Positions 8,694 through 12,912 of a stretch of 64,000 nucleotides of DNA are shown here, one piece after another. How positions within the stretch are numbered: position 1 is the stretch's first letter; each line of letters begins with the position of its first letter. Location of the stretch: IMG/VR virus record IMGVR_UViG_3300048927_000250, positions 1 to 64,000 of that record; one strand, 5' to 3'. The position numbers and the translations under genes are program-made. The notes under the pieces are model-generated. The model was not told the DNA's origin. It saw only the letters and a list, made by a program, of their open reading frames with translations, and made no database searches.

Positions 8694-9096
8694 CGAAACG
8701 CGGGTCGTGATTTTCTTCAGCCAGTGTTGCAGGGATTGCTTGCACTGGTTCAACCGGGATACTAAGGTTTGCATAGGCTGCCTCGTCGTGTTCAATTTGA
8801 CGCTTCTTCTCAGCAGACATGGTCGAACGTACCAGCTCTGTCGCCATTTCGCTTTTATAGTACATGCAAATGGAATTGTTCGCCTTGCTCCGTGGACCGA
8901 AGTTCAGCACCCACAAGTTCCCTTTACGTTGCTTATTGACAGAGATGCAGGACACGTCGCGCAAATCAATCGACGCCGTACCTCCCAAATCGTCATTGAC
9001 GCTATAGTTGAAATCCACCACCTTTTCCAGGTAGCGTGATTCCATACTGATGCCACACATCTTTAACAGTGATGGTGCCCCAGAGATTTCATCCAT
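8593..9096 (-). CDS. Hypothetical protein
   Basis: ATG at 9096 with GAGG SD, overlapping the stop of the DHH gene. Confidence 0.5.
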   Translation of the reverse strand: MDEISGAPSLLKMCGISMESRYLEKVVDFNYSVNDDLGGTASIDLRDVSCISVNKQRKGNLWVLNFGPRSKANNSICMYYKSEMATELVRSTMSAEKKRQIEHDEAAYANLSIPVEPVQAIPATLAEENHDPRFDGESHPRGNGYWRVLLRRLFGRVRERTHNERVD

Positions 9097-10054
9097 TCTC
9101 AGCCTCACTTGCAGCATGAAGTTCTTTGTTAGCATCGAAGAGCATGGCAGCAAGTGTTTCCGGCGTAATGGCGAAAAACAGCTCCACACCTGCCGCGTTC
9201 GCATGACCACCCCCGCCCAGCTTCTCAGCCAGAAAGCGGACGTTATAGTCTTTTGAACGCAGTGAAACCATCGACCCCATTTTACGATGGAAATAACAAG
9301 CAACCACGTCATATGAATCTTTGATGCGGTCGCAAAGTTCCGAGGTAATAGGGCGGTGACAGTTCACGACAGCCATCTTACCTGAATCGCCAAACGGCCA
9401 TTCGGTCAGACAGTTATCGAGGTGGAATTGAATCTCGACATCTCGTTTTTCCTTCAACGCTTCTGAGGCTTCTTTCACGCCGAGGTATGCCGTGGCACCC
9501 ATGGTCGAGGAGAAGACACCGTCGTTAACCACGCCAACATCGTCGATTAAACGGTTGAACTCAGAGAACGGTTTGTTGAGGAAAAGGATGAAGAACTCGT
9601 AGAAGTCCCGCGAGTCTGGAAGTTTGAACTGCCAGAGGTCACGGTCTTGTACACAAGCGAGTACATAGGGGAGCGGTGTGTCCGGGTACAGATGCGCCCA
9701 GGTCAACCCTGCACCAGAACGTGTTCCGTCTAATGTCAGCTCAACATTAGCAGCACGGAGCACGGCTTGAAACTCTGGGCAGTCCGCTTTTGCATACGCG
9801 TCAACCATTGACGCATGATGGTCGAGGATAACAACGCGAGCAGGCTCTAACTTCGCGAGGTTACTGATTTCCTCAGGCGGTGGTGCAAAATCAACGAAGT
9901 ACAGCGTATCGCCCTGGCCAACTCCTTCTAACGGCAGCGGGGAGTTATAGTGGACTGGTCGGTAAGTTGCGCTCGGTAACGCACGCCACAAAGTTGCAGC
10001 GGCGGCAAATCCGTCGATGCACAGTGCGTGATAAAATACAAAAAAGTTATTCAC
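9089..10054 (-). CDS. DHH/DHHA1-family phosphoesterase
   Basis: Motifs YHxxCxDG, YFVDF, ILDHH, SGA, DRDLW, SLRS and GGGGHxxAAG. Confidence 0.9.
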   Translation of the reverse strand: MNNFFVFYHALCIDGFAAAATLWRALPSATYRPVHYNSPLPLEGVGQGDTLYFVDFAPPPEEISNLAKLEPARVVILDHHASMVDAYAKADCPEFQAVLRAANVELTLDGTRSGAGLTWAHLYPDTPLPYVLACVQDRDLWQFKLPDSRDFYEFFILFLNKPFSEFNRLIDDVGVVNDGVFSSTMGATAYLGVKEASEALKEKRDVEIQFHLDNCLTEWPFGDSGKMAVVNCHRPITSELCDRIKDSYDVVACYFHRKMGSMVSLRSKDYNVRFLAEKLGGGGHANAAGVELFFAITPETLAAMLFDANKELHAASEAENG

Positions 10055-10087
10055 GGTGGACCCCCTGAGATGGGTACGGGATTATAC

Positions 10088-10366
10088 TTAAACGGATAGG
10101 AATTGCTTTGAAGAATCGCGCAGGGCCAGAACGTTAAAGTGACCGCTGCTAATTGTGTTAATGATGAAGAACGCATCCTCAGGCTCCTCTATTATTTTAT
10201 CGCAGTAACGTCTCGGAGTACGGCGAGTGAATCGTGCTTTCATGGAGCGCGCGCACTTCTTTATTTTCCGAGCATTACCATTATTAAAATGATAACAGAG
10301 GGTGATGGTTGAGAGGAAATCAATTATCTCTTCCACTTCCTGATAGTCAAAGTTATTCACAGACAT
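10088..10366 (-). CDS. Hypothetical protein (AT-rich)
   Basis: 92-aa ORF in operon orientation; no recognised motif. Confidence 0.55.
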   Translation of the reverse strand: MSVNNFDYQEVEEIIDFLSTITLCYHFNNGNARKIKKCARSMKARFTRRTPRRYCDKIIEEPEDAFFIINTISSGHFNVLALRDSSKQFLSV

Positions 10367-10431: not shown

Positions 10432-10677
10432 TTACCACCGCCGTTTCTTACCCGGAAGATTCCAGCTGGTACCGTTCGAACGGTTAGGGTTTCCGCGCAG
10501 TAGCGCCACCCGTAGGTTGAACATGGGGTCCTTTTTAGCCTGTTCCTCCAGTTTTTGCTGGCGCACATAACGCTGCACTAACTGGTTCGCCACCTGCTTT
10601 ACCTTGTCGCTCACCGGGTCTGGACCCTTCTCAGTGGTGAGGGTGGTAAGTGGTAAATGCTCTTCTTTATTTTCCAT
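10432..10677 (-). CDS. Hypothetical protein with NxxGTxxxP-basic C-tail (copy 4)
   Basis: ATG at 10677 with AAGGGG SD; ends NRSNGTSWNLPGKKRRW. Confidence 0.65.
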   Translation of the reverse strand: MENKEEHLPLTTLTTEKGPDPVSDKVKQVANQLVQRYVRQQKLEEQAKKDPMFNLRVALLRGNPNRSNGTSWNLPGKKRRW

Positions 10678-10951
10678 GTTTACGGTGCCCCTTCTTGCGG
10701 TCTGGTACCGGGTAGGCGAATGTCCCATCCGGATTCGTTTGATAATGACGCCGGGAGTTCTGCGGCATCTTGTCTTTTTTACCTAACCATACAAAGCTCA
10801 TCTTTTCCTCCTTCGATTGCTTTTCTTCAATAGCCGAGATAAGTTCAATAACCTCCGACATCGACATATATTCGATGGCGTCGAGTATCAGTTTCTTATC
10901 GACGACCGAACTTTTGTTTTGCTCGTGGGAAGACCATCGTCCCTTTGGCAT
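10667..10951 (-). CDS. Protein with ribosomal bL12 N-terminal-domain-like segment plus NxxGTxxxP-basic C-tail (copy 3); possible 44-aa short isoform from ATG 10801
   Basis: DKKLILDAIEYMSMSEVIELISAIEEK aligns to E. coli L7/L12 [33 protein letters not shown] SD before 10951 and AAGGAGG SD before 10801. Confidence 0.6.
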   Translation of the reverse strand: MPKGRWSSHEQNKSSVVDKKLILDAIEYMSMSEVIELISAIEEKQSKEEKMSFVWLGKKDKMPQNSRRHYQTNPDGTFAYPVPDRKKGHRKHGK

Positions 10952-11771
10952 TGGTAACCAACTCCTTGCGTTGTTTGCCGTTCACCGTGATGTCACCATT
11001 GACCCGTTGACGCGCTGAACCGAAGGTGTTAAGTAGACTACGGCAACCAGGACTGGAACCGAAGGGGTCAGGGATATCCAACGTTACCGCCTTCACCCCA
11101 CCGTCAAGTTTATCAAGCGAGCGCTTTAGACGCGCACTTGGTTCGTTGGGTCTAATCTCGTTCAGGTACTGACATTGAACGTCCCGGTCAATGGGGTCCA
11201 GTGGCAGGTCGACGTCACGCAACCAGTTAGGTAAAGAGTCAATCTCAACGTTCAGTGCATCGGGGTGACCCTGACGACTTTTCACAACGCCGTACGAGAC
11301 AACCTGTCCGTCAATCATACGCGGCGAGATACTGATTTCGACGTCGGCTTCTTTACGACCCAAGCCTAACTCGTCAAATTCTTTATTCCAGTCTGTCGGG
11401 GTCGGTGCCCGCATCGTAAGAACCTTGAAGCCCGCCGGTTCATTGGCCATCCGTGCTTTAATGCGGTCAAAGAGTTCCTGACCATGGTGATGTTTAGCGG
11501 CGATGTCAGGGTAGTCTGGCATCCGTTCGGCCATCTCAGCCATCATGCGAATCTTCTCTTCACTAAGATGCGGCGCAATCATTTTCAGGAATTGGGCGAA
11601 GTTAGGAATCTGACCGTTGGGGAACAGTGCTGCGTTGGCGGAGACCTTACTGCCATCGAGAGCCCGCTCTAGCGCCGCTTCTATTGCGTCGGGCGAGTAG
11701 CTTACCCCATTGCGATTAGGAACGTTGAGTGAACCAATATTCAACGATACGCCTTTATCTTTCTTTTCCAT
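10896..11771 (-). CDS. Hypothetical protein with NxxGTxxxP-basic C-tail (copy 2)
   Basis: 291-aa ORF ending ELVTNAKGTMVFPRAKQKFGRR. Confidence 0.7.
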   Translation of the reverse strand: MEKKDKGVSLNIGSLNVPNRNGVSYSPDAIEAALERALDGSKVSANAALFPNGQIPNFAQFLKMIAPHLSEEKIRMMAEMAERMPDYPDIAAKHHHGQELFDRIKARMANEPAGFKVLTMRAPTPTDWNKEFDELGLGRKEADVEISISPRMIDGQVVSYGVVKSRQGHPDALNVEIDSLPNWLRDVDLPLDPIDRDVQCQYLNEIRPNEPSARLKRSLDKLDGGVKAVTLDIPDPFGSSPGCRSLLNTFGSARQRVNGDITVNGKQRKELVTNAKGTMVFPRAKQKFGRR

Positions 11772-12127
11772 TATCTTCTTCCTCTGCGTTGTTTGGGTGC
11801 AGGCCAGGCCATAGTCCCGGCGTTGTTCATCATCAGTTCGCGACGGCCATCACTACGTAAACGCTTACCTTCTACCGGCGAACCTAGTTCAGCAATACAG
11901 TCTAAGTTCTCGACCTTGCTGCGTAAACCCCGGGCATACTCCTCAGTATTGGGGAAGAGCCCTTGACTGTGACGCAGTTCCCTGAGCAACGCCCCACCAA
12001 TACTCCCCATCCCAGCCCCAAGAACGACCACCTTCCGTTCCTTAGGGTCAATAACGAATGGGCCTTTCTCCCCGTTTTTAATCGCATCTTTTAACGGGTC
12101 GAGCCAATTCTCTTCTTCGTCCATCAT
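11771..12127 (-). CDS. Hypothetical protein with NxxGTxxxP-basic C-tail (copy 1)
   Basis: GGAGG SD; ends ELMMNNAGTMAWPAPKQRRGRR. Confidence 0.7.
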   Translation of the reverse strand: MMDEEENWLDPLKDAIKNGEKGPFVIDPKERKVVVLGAGMGSIGGALLRELRHSQGLFPNTEEYARGLRSKVENLDCIAELGSPVEGKRLRSDGRRELMMNNAGTMAWPAPKQRRGRR

Positions 12128-12201: not shown

Positions 12202-12636
12202 TTAGCGCGCGGCCCAGGTACGCTCAACACGACCACGGTTGCGCATGACACGGTCTTCTTGCTCCAGGTCCACGACGCGGCGGCGACGAGAGACATCGGC
12301 AAAGACTTCCGTTGCCACTTCAGGGTCCAGTCGATATTGGTCGACTAAACCGGTAACGGCTTCCAGCTCTGGGTTAGTGTTATCCGCTAACGCGTTCGTC
12401 CGGTGGTCGTCAATCCTTGAGGTGATTTCTTCAAGGTCATGACGGTCCAGAAAACGTTGAGCCTGGCGATGGATTTGAATATCCCTTACGTTGCCGGGGA
12501 CAGATGGTTCGTTGAAAGTTTCGATAACCGCTTTGACGTCATCAACTGGTACACCTTCGTAGGCCGAAATCATGTCATCGGTGAACCCACGTTCATGTGC
12601 AGTTAGGACGCGCTCAGTAATGCTGTTCATTGACAT
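12202..12636 (-). CDS. Hypothetical protein
   Basis: AAGGAG SD, protein-like composition, TATG-type motif upstream. Confidence 0.65.
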   Translation of the reverse strand: MSMNSITERVLTAHERGFTDDMISAYEGVPVDDVKAVIETFNEPSVPGNVRDIQIHRQAQRFLDRHDLEEITSRIDDHRTNALADNTNPELEAVTGLVDQYRLDPEVATEVFADVSRRRRVVDLEQEDRVMRNRGRVERTWAAR

Positions 12637-12912
12637 TGTCGAGACTCCTTAATACAGTGATTGAGTTCATATCCGTATTGGGTGCAGGTGAATAGAGTTT
12701 TAGCTTCCACTTAACTACATAAGTCCAATCGACTCCGTAAAAAATGACTTTAAGGAGTGCAGTGTACGTTTCCCACGGATATGGTGATAAATAACAACGG
12801 TGGTGACAGTGTCAAACATCCCGTGTTAATCATGGTGGTCTTTCCTTTTGTTCGTAACGAATTGAATTAGTAACGTCGCCCGTGTGTCCGGGCGTCCGTT
12901 TAATACGTCTTA

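Follow-up and report, generated by a model that had tools for sequence, protein, structure and literature searches.

What is a phage gene doing with one half of a ribosomal protein? The question is raised by gene C, which lies on the minus strand of a 64,000-nucleotide stretch of DNA (positions 1 to 64,000 of the IMG/VR virus record IMGVR_UViG_3300048927_000250), referred to here as the window. In this region, the window matches Erwinia amylovora phage vB_Ea277G (OP991903, 218.5 kb) at 100% identity and phage PhiEaH1 at 99%. In bacteria, the N-terminal domain (NTD) of protein bL12 (L7/L12) is a helical hairpin through which the protein dimerises and attaches to helix alpha-8 of uL10; the C-terminal domain (CTD) recruits translational GTPases. 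These roles were reportedly established by Bocharov in 2004 and Diaconu in 2005. According to the original prediction, gene C grafts a bL12 NTD onto a novel basic tail that takes the place of the hinge and the CTD. Our comparison of sequences indicates that the chimera is real and that the roles are reversed, the tail being the core of the gene and the bL12 piece the accessory. The protein consists of an N-terminal segment of 18 amino acids (aa) encoded in the overlap with the upstream gene B, followed by the bL12-NTD-like hairpin and then by the basic tail.

10667..10951, minus strand: long open reading frame (ORF) of gene C, 94 aa and a stop codon, found in the ORF list and in GenBank as coding sequence WBF04754.1 (hypothetical protein, vB_Ea277G).
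10817..10903, minus strand: bL12-NTD-like helical hairpin, gene C aa 17-45, recognized by hhalign, by helices predicted with AlphaFold2 (AF2) and by a test of reading frame and selection.
10670..10786, minus strand: tail module of gene C, aa 56-94, with a basic stretch, a predicted hairpin around an N-x-x-G turn, an aromatic-Pro pair and a basic end.

The resemblance to bL12 was confirmed by several approaches. Residues 16-45 of the gene C protein (nt ~10817-10906) align without gaps to E. coli bL12 with 14/30 identities, as had been claimed, and three homologues of gene C share 15, 15 and 9 identities per 30 with the same protein. The BLOSUM62 score against bL12 was reached by 0 of 5000 shuffles for each of these four sequences. 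Identity to rplL at third codon positions is at chance level (9-15/30), and therefore the similarity exists at the protein level only, in agreement with the earlier remark that the codons look diverged. The Pfam model PF16320 (Ribosomal_L12_N) matched the window protein with an E value of 0.0055 and 16.8 bits, which is below the gathering score of 25, and it matched three of the four homologues, with a best E value of 2.8e-4. When the PDB was searched with the single sequence, the NTD of E. coli L7/L12 (1rqt) was the best match (E 0.023). A profile of the four homologues found 1rqt with an E value of 3.4e-5, E. coli bL12 coming first and other bacteria following. Alignment by hhalign of five long forms of gene C with 30 bacterial bL12 sequences gave a probability of 95.4% and an E value of 1.7e-8, pairing columns 17-45 with bL12 residues 3-31. 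In the phage DNA collection, the best matches beyond the phage's own gene were bL12 genes on Salmonella records. The likeness to the bL12 NTD (PF16320; 1RQT/1RQU) thus takes the form of an ungapped match of 29 residues over both helices with the core positions kept; the hydrophobic core positions of both helices are retained in the 1rqt and profile alignments alike. AF2, run as a single-chain monomer, predicted helices at residues 19-27 and 31-50 with a predicted local distance difference test (pLDDT) score of ~90 and a disordered tail. On the basis of these comparisons, the hairpin is considered a true, diverged homologue of the bL12 NTD. Since E. coli provided the best PDB match, the source was most likely a gammaproteobacterial (enterobacterial-type) host.

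The likeness ends with the hairpin. No match of gene C to PF00542, the model of the bL12 CTD, was found even at an E value of 10, and the hinge is also absent, so that this part of the original prediction holds. Because the hinge and the CTD are missing and the Pfam threshold was not reached, the gene C protein is not a bL12 but only a homologue of its NTD. It differs from bL12 in lacking the Ala/Gly hinge, the CTD and the Phe-Gly-Val sequence that closes helix 2, as well as in being phage-borne and located in a non-ribosomal operon.

Selection acts very differently on the parts of gene C. The ratio of non-synonymous to synonymous substitution rates (dN/dS) across its lineages in related phages, a comparison proposed at the outset and carried out here by the Nei-Gojobori method, was ~0.03 for aa 51-94, 0.3-0.6 for aa 19-50 and >1 for aa 1-18. 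The last value arises because these codons follow the near-invariant C-terminus of gene B in another frame. Over the hairpin region, the gene C frame contains 0 stops and has a ratio of non-synonymous to synonymous differences per site (pN/pS) of 0.62, compared to 6 and 9 stops and ratios of 1.04 and 2.02 in the other two frames. Neither a stop nor a frameshift was found in the hairpin in five diverged lineages, between which synonymous sites are saturated, and the sole indel measures 3 nt. In the close pair of contigs L004 and L015, 8 synonymous vs 4 non-synonymous changes were counted (dN/dS ~0.14). Given the stop-free frame, the lowest pN/pS and the 8 vs 4 changes in this pair, the hairpin is judged to be coding and under moderate purifying selection. 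As a separate observation, window positions 10770-10980 and 12520-12650 are 90-100% identical in nucleotides to contig L005, over a background of 55-80%. The former patch takes in the gene B tail and, in gene C, the hairpin and the first part of the tail, with a synonymous divergence of 0.08 vs 0.52 in the rest of the tail, and the latter covers the start of a 144-aa ORF. Such patches suggest either a recent recombination tract or a constraint at the nucleotide level.

The tail was described originally as a replacement grafted on bL12, and in this respect the prediction has to be turned around. The 44-aa tail contains 11 Lys and Arg, 3 His and 3 Asp and Glu residues, and its isoelectric point is 10.5. 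In the tail module (aa 56-94), 37/39 positions are invariant in seven sequences and pN/pS is 0.02. Residues 55-94 are near-invariant across lineages with gene B just 35-64% identical, and synonymous sites in the same codons vary freely. AF2 left the tail disordered except for a beta bridge at residues 72/78, predicted with low confidence. With its short alternating stretches on either side, the N-x-x-G turn would fit a small beta hairpin, after which comes a basic end that contains Pro. No match to the tail alone was obtained in Pfam, NCBIfam or PHROGs. It also occurs as a gene of its own. In contigs L012 and L013, a 44-codon gene begins 10-17 nt after gene B, with its own Shine-Dalgarno (SD) sequence, in-frame stops upstream and no hairpin.

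L012:5783-5917: free-standing 44-aa tail gene, aligned residue for residue with gene C aa 51-94 and starting exactly at the position of Met51.
L013:1694-1828: free-standing 44-aa tail gene with the same alignment and the same start.

A third short-form contig ends just past the same junction sequence between gene B and the tail gene. In a maximum-likelihood tree of gene B, the lineages were arranged as (L004, L015), (L003, (L014, (Ea277G, (L005, short clade)))), with a support of 98/96 for the short clade. The hairpin is thus probably ancestral and was deleted once, unless the root falls on the branch to the short clade. Wherever the root lies, the existence of these genes indicates that the 44-residue peptide works without the hairpin. 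The original prediction had named homologous loci lacking the bL12-like segment as evidence against it; they were found in one nested clade, where the hairpin is therefore dispensable, while elsewhere the hairpin is open and under purifying selection. We thus regard the tail as the conserved core of the gene and the hairpin as accessory, since the tail is its most conserved part, stands alone in a sister clade and is shared by the genes upstream.

This sharing concerns the two genes that precede gene C:

11771..12127, minus strand: gene A, 118 aa, of no known family, ending in a paralogous tail module of 33 aa (11774-11872).
10896..11771, minus strand: gene B, 291 aa, of no known family, ending in a paralogous tail module of 33 aa (10899-10997).

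The motif G-[TS]-hydrophobic-x-aromatic-P has three matches in the six-frame translation of the 64-kb window, and these lie at the ends of genes A, B and C, 15-19 residues short of the stop codon. The same pattern of three gene ends was observed in related contigs, and no further C-terminal copy of the motif was found in the rest of the 218-kb genome. The three tails can be aligned jointly without gaps over ~33 residues, with six invariant columns (R, N, G, T, P, G). The family is characterized by an extreme C-terminal stretch of ~33 aa with a basic pair, an N-x-x-G-T turn, an aromatic-Pro pair and a basic end with Gly. Comparison of the extreme C-termini by hhalign gave E values of 2.6e-6 for A and B, 1e-4 for C and A and 0.011 for C and B. 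Within each family the tails are near-invariant, and between families they are 24-30% identical. In genes A and B the tail is the best-conserved part, the N-terminal parts having many substitutions and indels. A profile of all three tails retrieved from the PDB only cupredoxin and superoxide dismutase hairpins, at insignificant scores (E 0.17 or worse).

The neighbouring gene products were also compared with known families and with the ribosomal stalk. Pfam, NCBIfam and PHROGs returned nothing for genes A, B and D, the last of which lies downstream of gene C. The basic, Trp-ending C-terminus of gene D, used as a neighbour control, was rejected as a fourth tail (hhalign E 0.15-0.43 against A, B and C); the C-terminal half of gene D is conserved, and in 7/7 lineages it finishes with a Lys-rich stretch and a Trp as the last residue. 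Gene A (11771-12127, minus strand) has a conserved Gly-x-Gly-x-x-Gly-like segment with a weak profile match to the strand-helix of the TrkA N-terminal Rossmann fold. An origin of its N-terminus as a copy of a host Rossmann protein was not accepted, as this GxGxxG-type match to TrkA was the only one, with a whole-sequence E value of 0.0013, an insignificant per-domain value and no Pfam match. Two ATGs stand side by side at the start of gene A, and the vB_Ea277G annotation uses the second. AF2 modelling of gene B with nine homologues did not provide a usable model (mean pLDDT 40). A phage-encoded partner helix resembling uL10 was sought in A, B and D and gained no support, the best match being that of uL10 138-145 to gene B 75-82 (E 0.29). 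This part of gene B (window 11520-11560, minus strand) is a Met/Ala/Glu-rich helix, and the match is probably a coincidence; the part of uL10 to which bL12 dimers bind is a C-terminal segment that presumably does not include 138-145.

Which products does gene C yield? The long ORF is intact in PhiEaH1 and in five further lineages, and two SD/start pairs serve it:

10962..10967, minus strand: SD sequence AAGGAG of the long product, 10 nt before the ATG at 10949-10951; duplex with the anti-SD of -8.0 kcal/mol.
10896..10951, minus strand: 56 nt in which the beginning of gene C and the end of gene B overlap out of frame.
10807..10813, minus strand: internal SD sequence AAGGAGG, 5 nt before the ATG at 10799-10801 (Met51); -11.7 kcal/mol, the strongest anti-SD pairing of the neighbourhood.
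10667..10801, minus strand: nested short ORF, 44 aa and a stop codon, the basic tail alone, which aligns with the free-standing 44-aa genes.

The pairing energies make both pairs credible, as the original prediction held. The upstream AAGGAG is at the same time a Lys-Glu codon pair inside gene B. It is present in 6/6 long-form lineages, and all three short-form contigs have AAAGAG instead; this is the pattern expected if a synonymous G is retained for initiation of the long product. As the short forms make up one clade, the change counts as a single event. At the Met51 position, an SD-like sequence and an ATG (GTG in L003) were found in all long forms. In PhiEaH1, only 66 aa from Met29 are annotated (AGX01813; L002 3368-3568), though the 94-codon frame and both SD/ATG pairs are intact; neither Met29 nor Met31 is preceded by an SD sequence. 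For a frameshift fusion of B to C, the gene C frame being +1 relative to gene B, no signal was seen. Based on the strength and conservation of the SD sequences and on the free-standing short gene in relatives, gene C likely gives two nested products, from ATG 10951 and ATG 10801. Nested in-frame products from internal starts are well known from T7 gene 4A/4B, lambda S105/S107 and IF2 alpha/beta, and the two SD/start pairs of the gene C ORF predict, in the same manner, a long and an N-terminally shortened product.

How these products may act can be outlined as follows. The core product would be a strongly basic, largely disordered peptide of 44 residues from ATG 10801. It and the C-terminal modules of A and B presumably share a single target, itself highly conserved. 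Starting at ATG 10951, the long product would add the hairpin derived from the bL12 NTD, with no hinge and no factor-binding CTD. Most likely this hairpin would behave as it does in bL12 and form a four-helix-bundle dimer, either with itself or with host bL12, and the dimer would sit on helix alpha-8 of uL10. Such docking would put the basic peptide at the stalk and the GTPase-associated centre, or would tie ribosomes to the partner of the peptide. The use of both starts, the dimerisation of the hairpin, the docking on the stalk and the target of the peptide are all points that we infer. Two nested products with a hairpin docking the basic peptide at the stalk is the overall reading that we favour, tentatively and with somewhat less than even confidence; the docking of the long product on the stalk, taken by itself, appears quite possible. 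Docking is supported by the persistence of bL12-like residues in otherwise diverged lineages, and it would also fit a non-structural operon in a phage family already known, through PhiKZ014, to target ribosomes. The peptide is also found on two unrelated proteins and exists alone, so its target need not be the ribosome. A more specific version seems unlikely to us, namely a stalk adaptor that replaces or pairs with host bL12 on uL10 and swaps the CTDs for the phage peptide at the GTPase-associated centre, with A and B delivering the same type of peptide via other anchors.

A number of observations weigh against docking on the stalk. Helix 2 of bL12 closes with Glu-Lys-Phe-Gly-Val, of which Phe31, Gly32 and Val33 hardly vary, if at all, across the 30 bL12 sequences; in the phage proteins this end is gone, and Gln, Glu or Tyr followed by charged residues stands in its place. 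The hairpin scores below the Pfam gathering threshold and evolves about 10 times faster than the tail. The gene C protein has an N-terminal extension of 16 residues, of which there is none in bL12. For the tail, no relative could be detected among 1.84 billion representative proteins or in the PDB, Pfam, NCBIfam and PHROGs. Finally, one clade lost the hairpin cleanly and kept the tail gene, and therefore stalk docking cannot be essential to the function of the peptide. Several of these points would also fit a hairpin that serves only as a generic dimerisation module. The basic peptide would then act with doubled valency on a target other than the ribosome, for example nucleic acid or a protein of the phage or the host, and neither the stalk nor the ribosome would be contacted. 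The relaxed constraint on the hairpin (dN/dS 0.3-0.6), its absence from one clade and the lost Phe-Gly-Val all speak for this explanation, as does the presence of the same type of tail in genes A and B, whose N-terminal parts are unrelated and do not resemble ribosomal proteins. However, lineages that are 30-40% apart in gene C are all still bL12-like, three of them at 14-15/30 identities, and the profile outscores any single sequence, which would be unexpected if any amphipathic hairpin sufficed. Moreover, bL12 NTD dimers exchange on ribosomes, and given this exchange it would be difficult to prevent a close mimic from reaching uL10. We thus find dimerisation alone doubtful as an explanation.

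It has also been considered that the tails of A, B and C assemble with each other into a complex made by stoichiometric co-translation of the overlapping genes, gene C being a minimal third subunit whose optional hairpin dimerises or tethers the complex. In all lineages, the genes that carry the paralogous tails are indeed neighbours whose stops and starts overlap; the tails are near-invariant per family and 24-30% identical across families, as expected for distinct positions in a complex, and a tail-only gene C is kept wherever A and B are. On the other hand, all three tails are strongly cationic and would repel each other in the absence of a polyanion, and AF2 gave no confident fold for the tail. 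This arrangement, which is compatible with the other explanations, looks improbable to us. If the 44-aa product were the only one, and the 50 codons before it the decaying but still open remnant of an old bL12 fusion, this could account for the internal SD being the strongest of the neighbourhood, for the natural tail-only genes and for the fact that the PhiEaH1 annotators did not call the full ORF. A remnant should hardly have stayed free of stops and frameshifts in five lineages with saturated synonymous sites, when the other frames contain 6 and 9 stops, and it would not be expected to show purifying selection in the close pair, a retained bL12 similarity and an AAGGAG kept in the long-form lineages only; we therefore consider it very unlikely. 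A chance match of two amphipathic helices to bL12 is barely credible. The single-sequence scores are marginal (0.0055 in Pfam, 0.023 in the PDB), but bL12 was the top match in three independent databases, the score climbs with the inclusion of homologues, no shuffle among the 5000 reached it, and the ungapped alignment spans the whole domain and coincides with the predicted helices.

Virus-encoded bL12 domains have been described before. They match the Pfam model Ribosomal_L12, that is, the CTD, with residues contacting uL11 and translation factors, and occur alone or inside large proteins (Mizuno et al., 2019; PMC6375957). Gene C resembles them in being a phage gene with a piece of bL12 under purifying selection, presumably derived from a host. 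It differs in that those genes keep the CTD, while gene C keeps the opposite half. In agreement with this, the genuine phage matches obtained by tblastn with E. coli bL12 against 50,697 phage records covered either residues ~55-100 or the whole length of the protein, and none was confined to the NTD. The described cases thus carry the CTD or the whole protein (Mizuno et al., 2019), which bears out the statement in the original prediction that phage bL12 homologues mostly retain the CTD. In the full-text literature, no paper was found that pairs Ribosomal_L12_N with phage, and none that joins bL12, N-terminal domain, uL10 and phage-encoded. The nearest conceptual precedent may be the mycobacteriophage homologue of bL9, which retains the ribosome-anchoring N-domain and has unrelated sequence in place of the distal one (Mizuno et al., 2019; PMC6375957). 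It concerns, however, another ribosomal protein and another site of the ribosome, and its replacement is not known as a shared module or as a free-standing gene. As regards action on the ribosome, another chimallivirus, PhiKZ, makes the early protein PhiKZ014, which binds ribosomes by clamping 5S rRNA at the central protuberance (Gerovac et al., 2024; PMC10914614). PhiKZ014 and gene C have in common that a chimallivirus protein is thought to act on host ribosomes, which for gene C is putative; PhiKZ014 has no homology to ribosomal proteins and no sequence relation to gene C.

The genus of the source phage, Iapetusvirus, is placed in the Chimalliviridae (nucleus-forming jumbo phages) by the current NCBI taxonomy, and the GenBank record OP991903 names no family. 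Outside the window, OP991903 103210-104178 is annotated as a tubulin-like protein; on account of this protein and of the taxonomic placement, vB_Ea277G is expected to build a phage nucleus. The setting of gene C in this chimallivirus genome is a non-structural operon with a DHH phosphoesterase. The stop of gene A overlaps the start of gene B (TAATG), and the start of gene D overlaps the end of gene C by 11 nt:

10432..10677, minus strand: gene D, 81 aa, in the same operon as gene C.

The contigs of relatives are syntenic: gene A (118-137 aa) is the most upstream of the group, and gene B (240-296 aa), gene C and gene D (75-89 aa) follow in this order, then a protein of the DUF7740 type and the DHH phosphoesterase; PhoH is located farther upstream. 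In the window, positions 9089-10366 (minus strand), downstream, encode a DUF7740-like protein of 92 aa (PHROG 6022, E 2.6e-5) and a DHH/DHHA1 phosphoesterase (PHROG 4771, E 2e-91). Rfam gave no match in the region, and sigma-70 promoter and terminator patterns were no commoner there than in shuffles.

Gene C appears to have a narrow distribution. Three further clusters of relatives were found among 5.8 billion proteins, and a search with gene B gave nine clusters. An exhaustive profile search of the 1.84 billion representative proteins returned only gene C's own cluster. Genes A, B and C, searched by tblastn against the 50,697 phage records (INPHARED), were found only in vB_Ea277G and PhiEaH1. 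In IMG/VR there is one contig with an identical copy of gene C, which represents the same phage only, and the bacterial genomes and Joint Genome Institute metagenomes that were scanned contained no relatives.

Gene C differs from the phage bL12 pieces known so far, which are the CTD or the whole protein, in that it has only the anchoring and dimerising half of bL12. The basic, near-invariant C-terminal peptides of the three genes, of which one also stands alone, form a family that has not been described previously, and the extreme conservation of the tail points to a very conserved target. The stalk recruits IF2, EF-Tu, EF-G and RF3, and a phage protein with the NTD alone would be a natural dominant-negative or adaptor for it. 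If the stalk-adaptor version of the mechanism is true, a nucleus-forming phage could retune host ribosomes or tether them to a phage structure or mRNA. More generally, if docking takes place, gene C would offer a simple handle on how chimalliviruses, whose translation is cytoplasmic and whose replication occurs in a proteinaceous nucleus, manipulate the ribosomes of their hosts.

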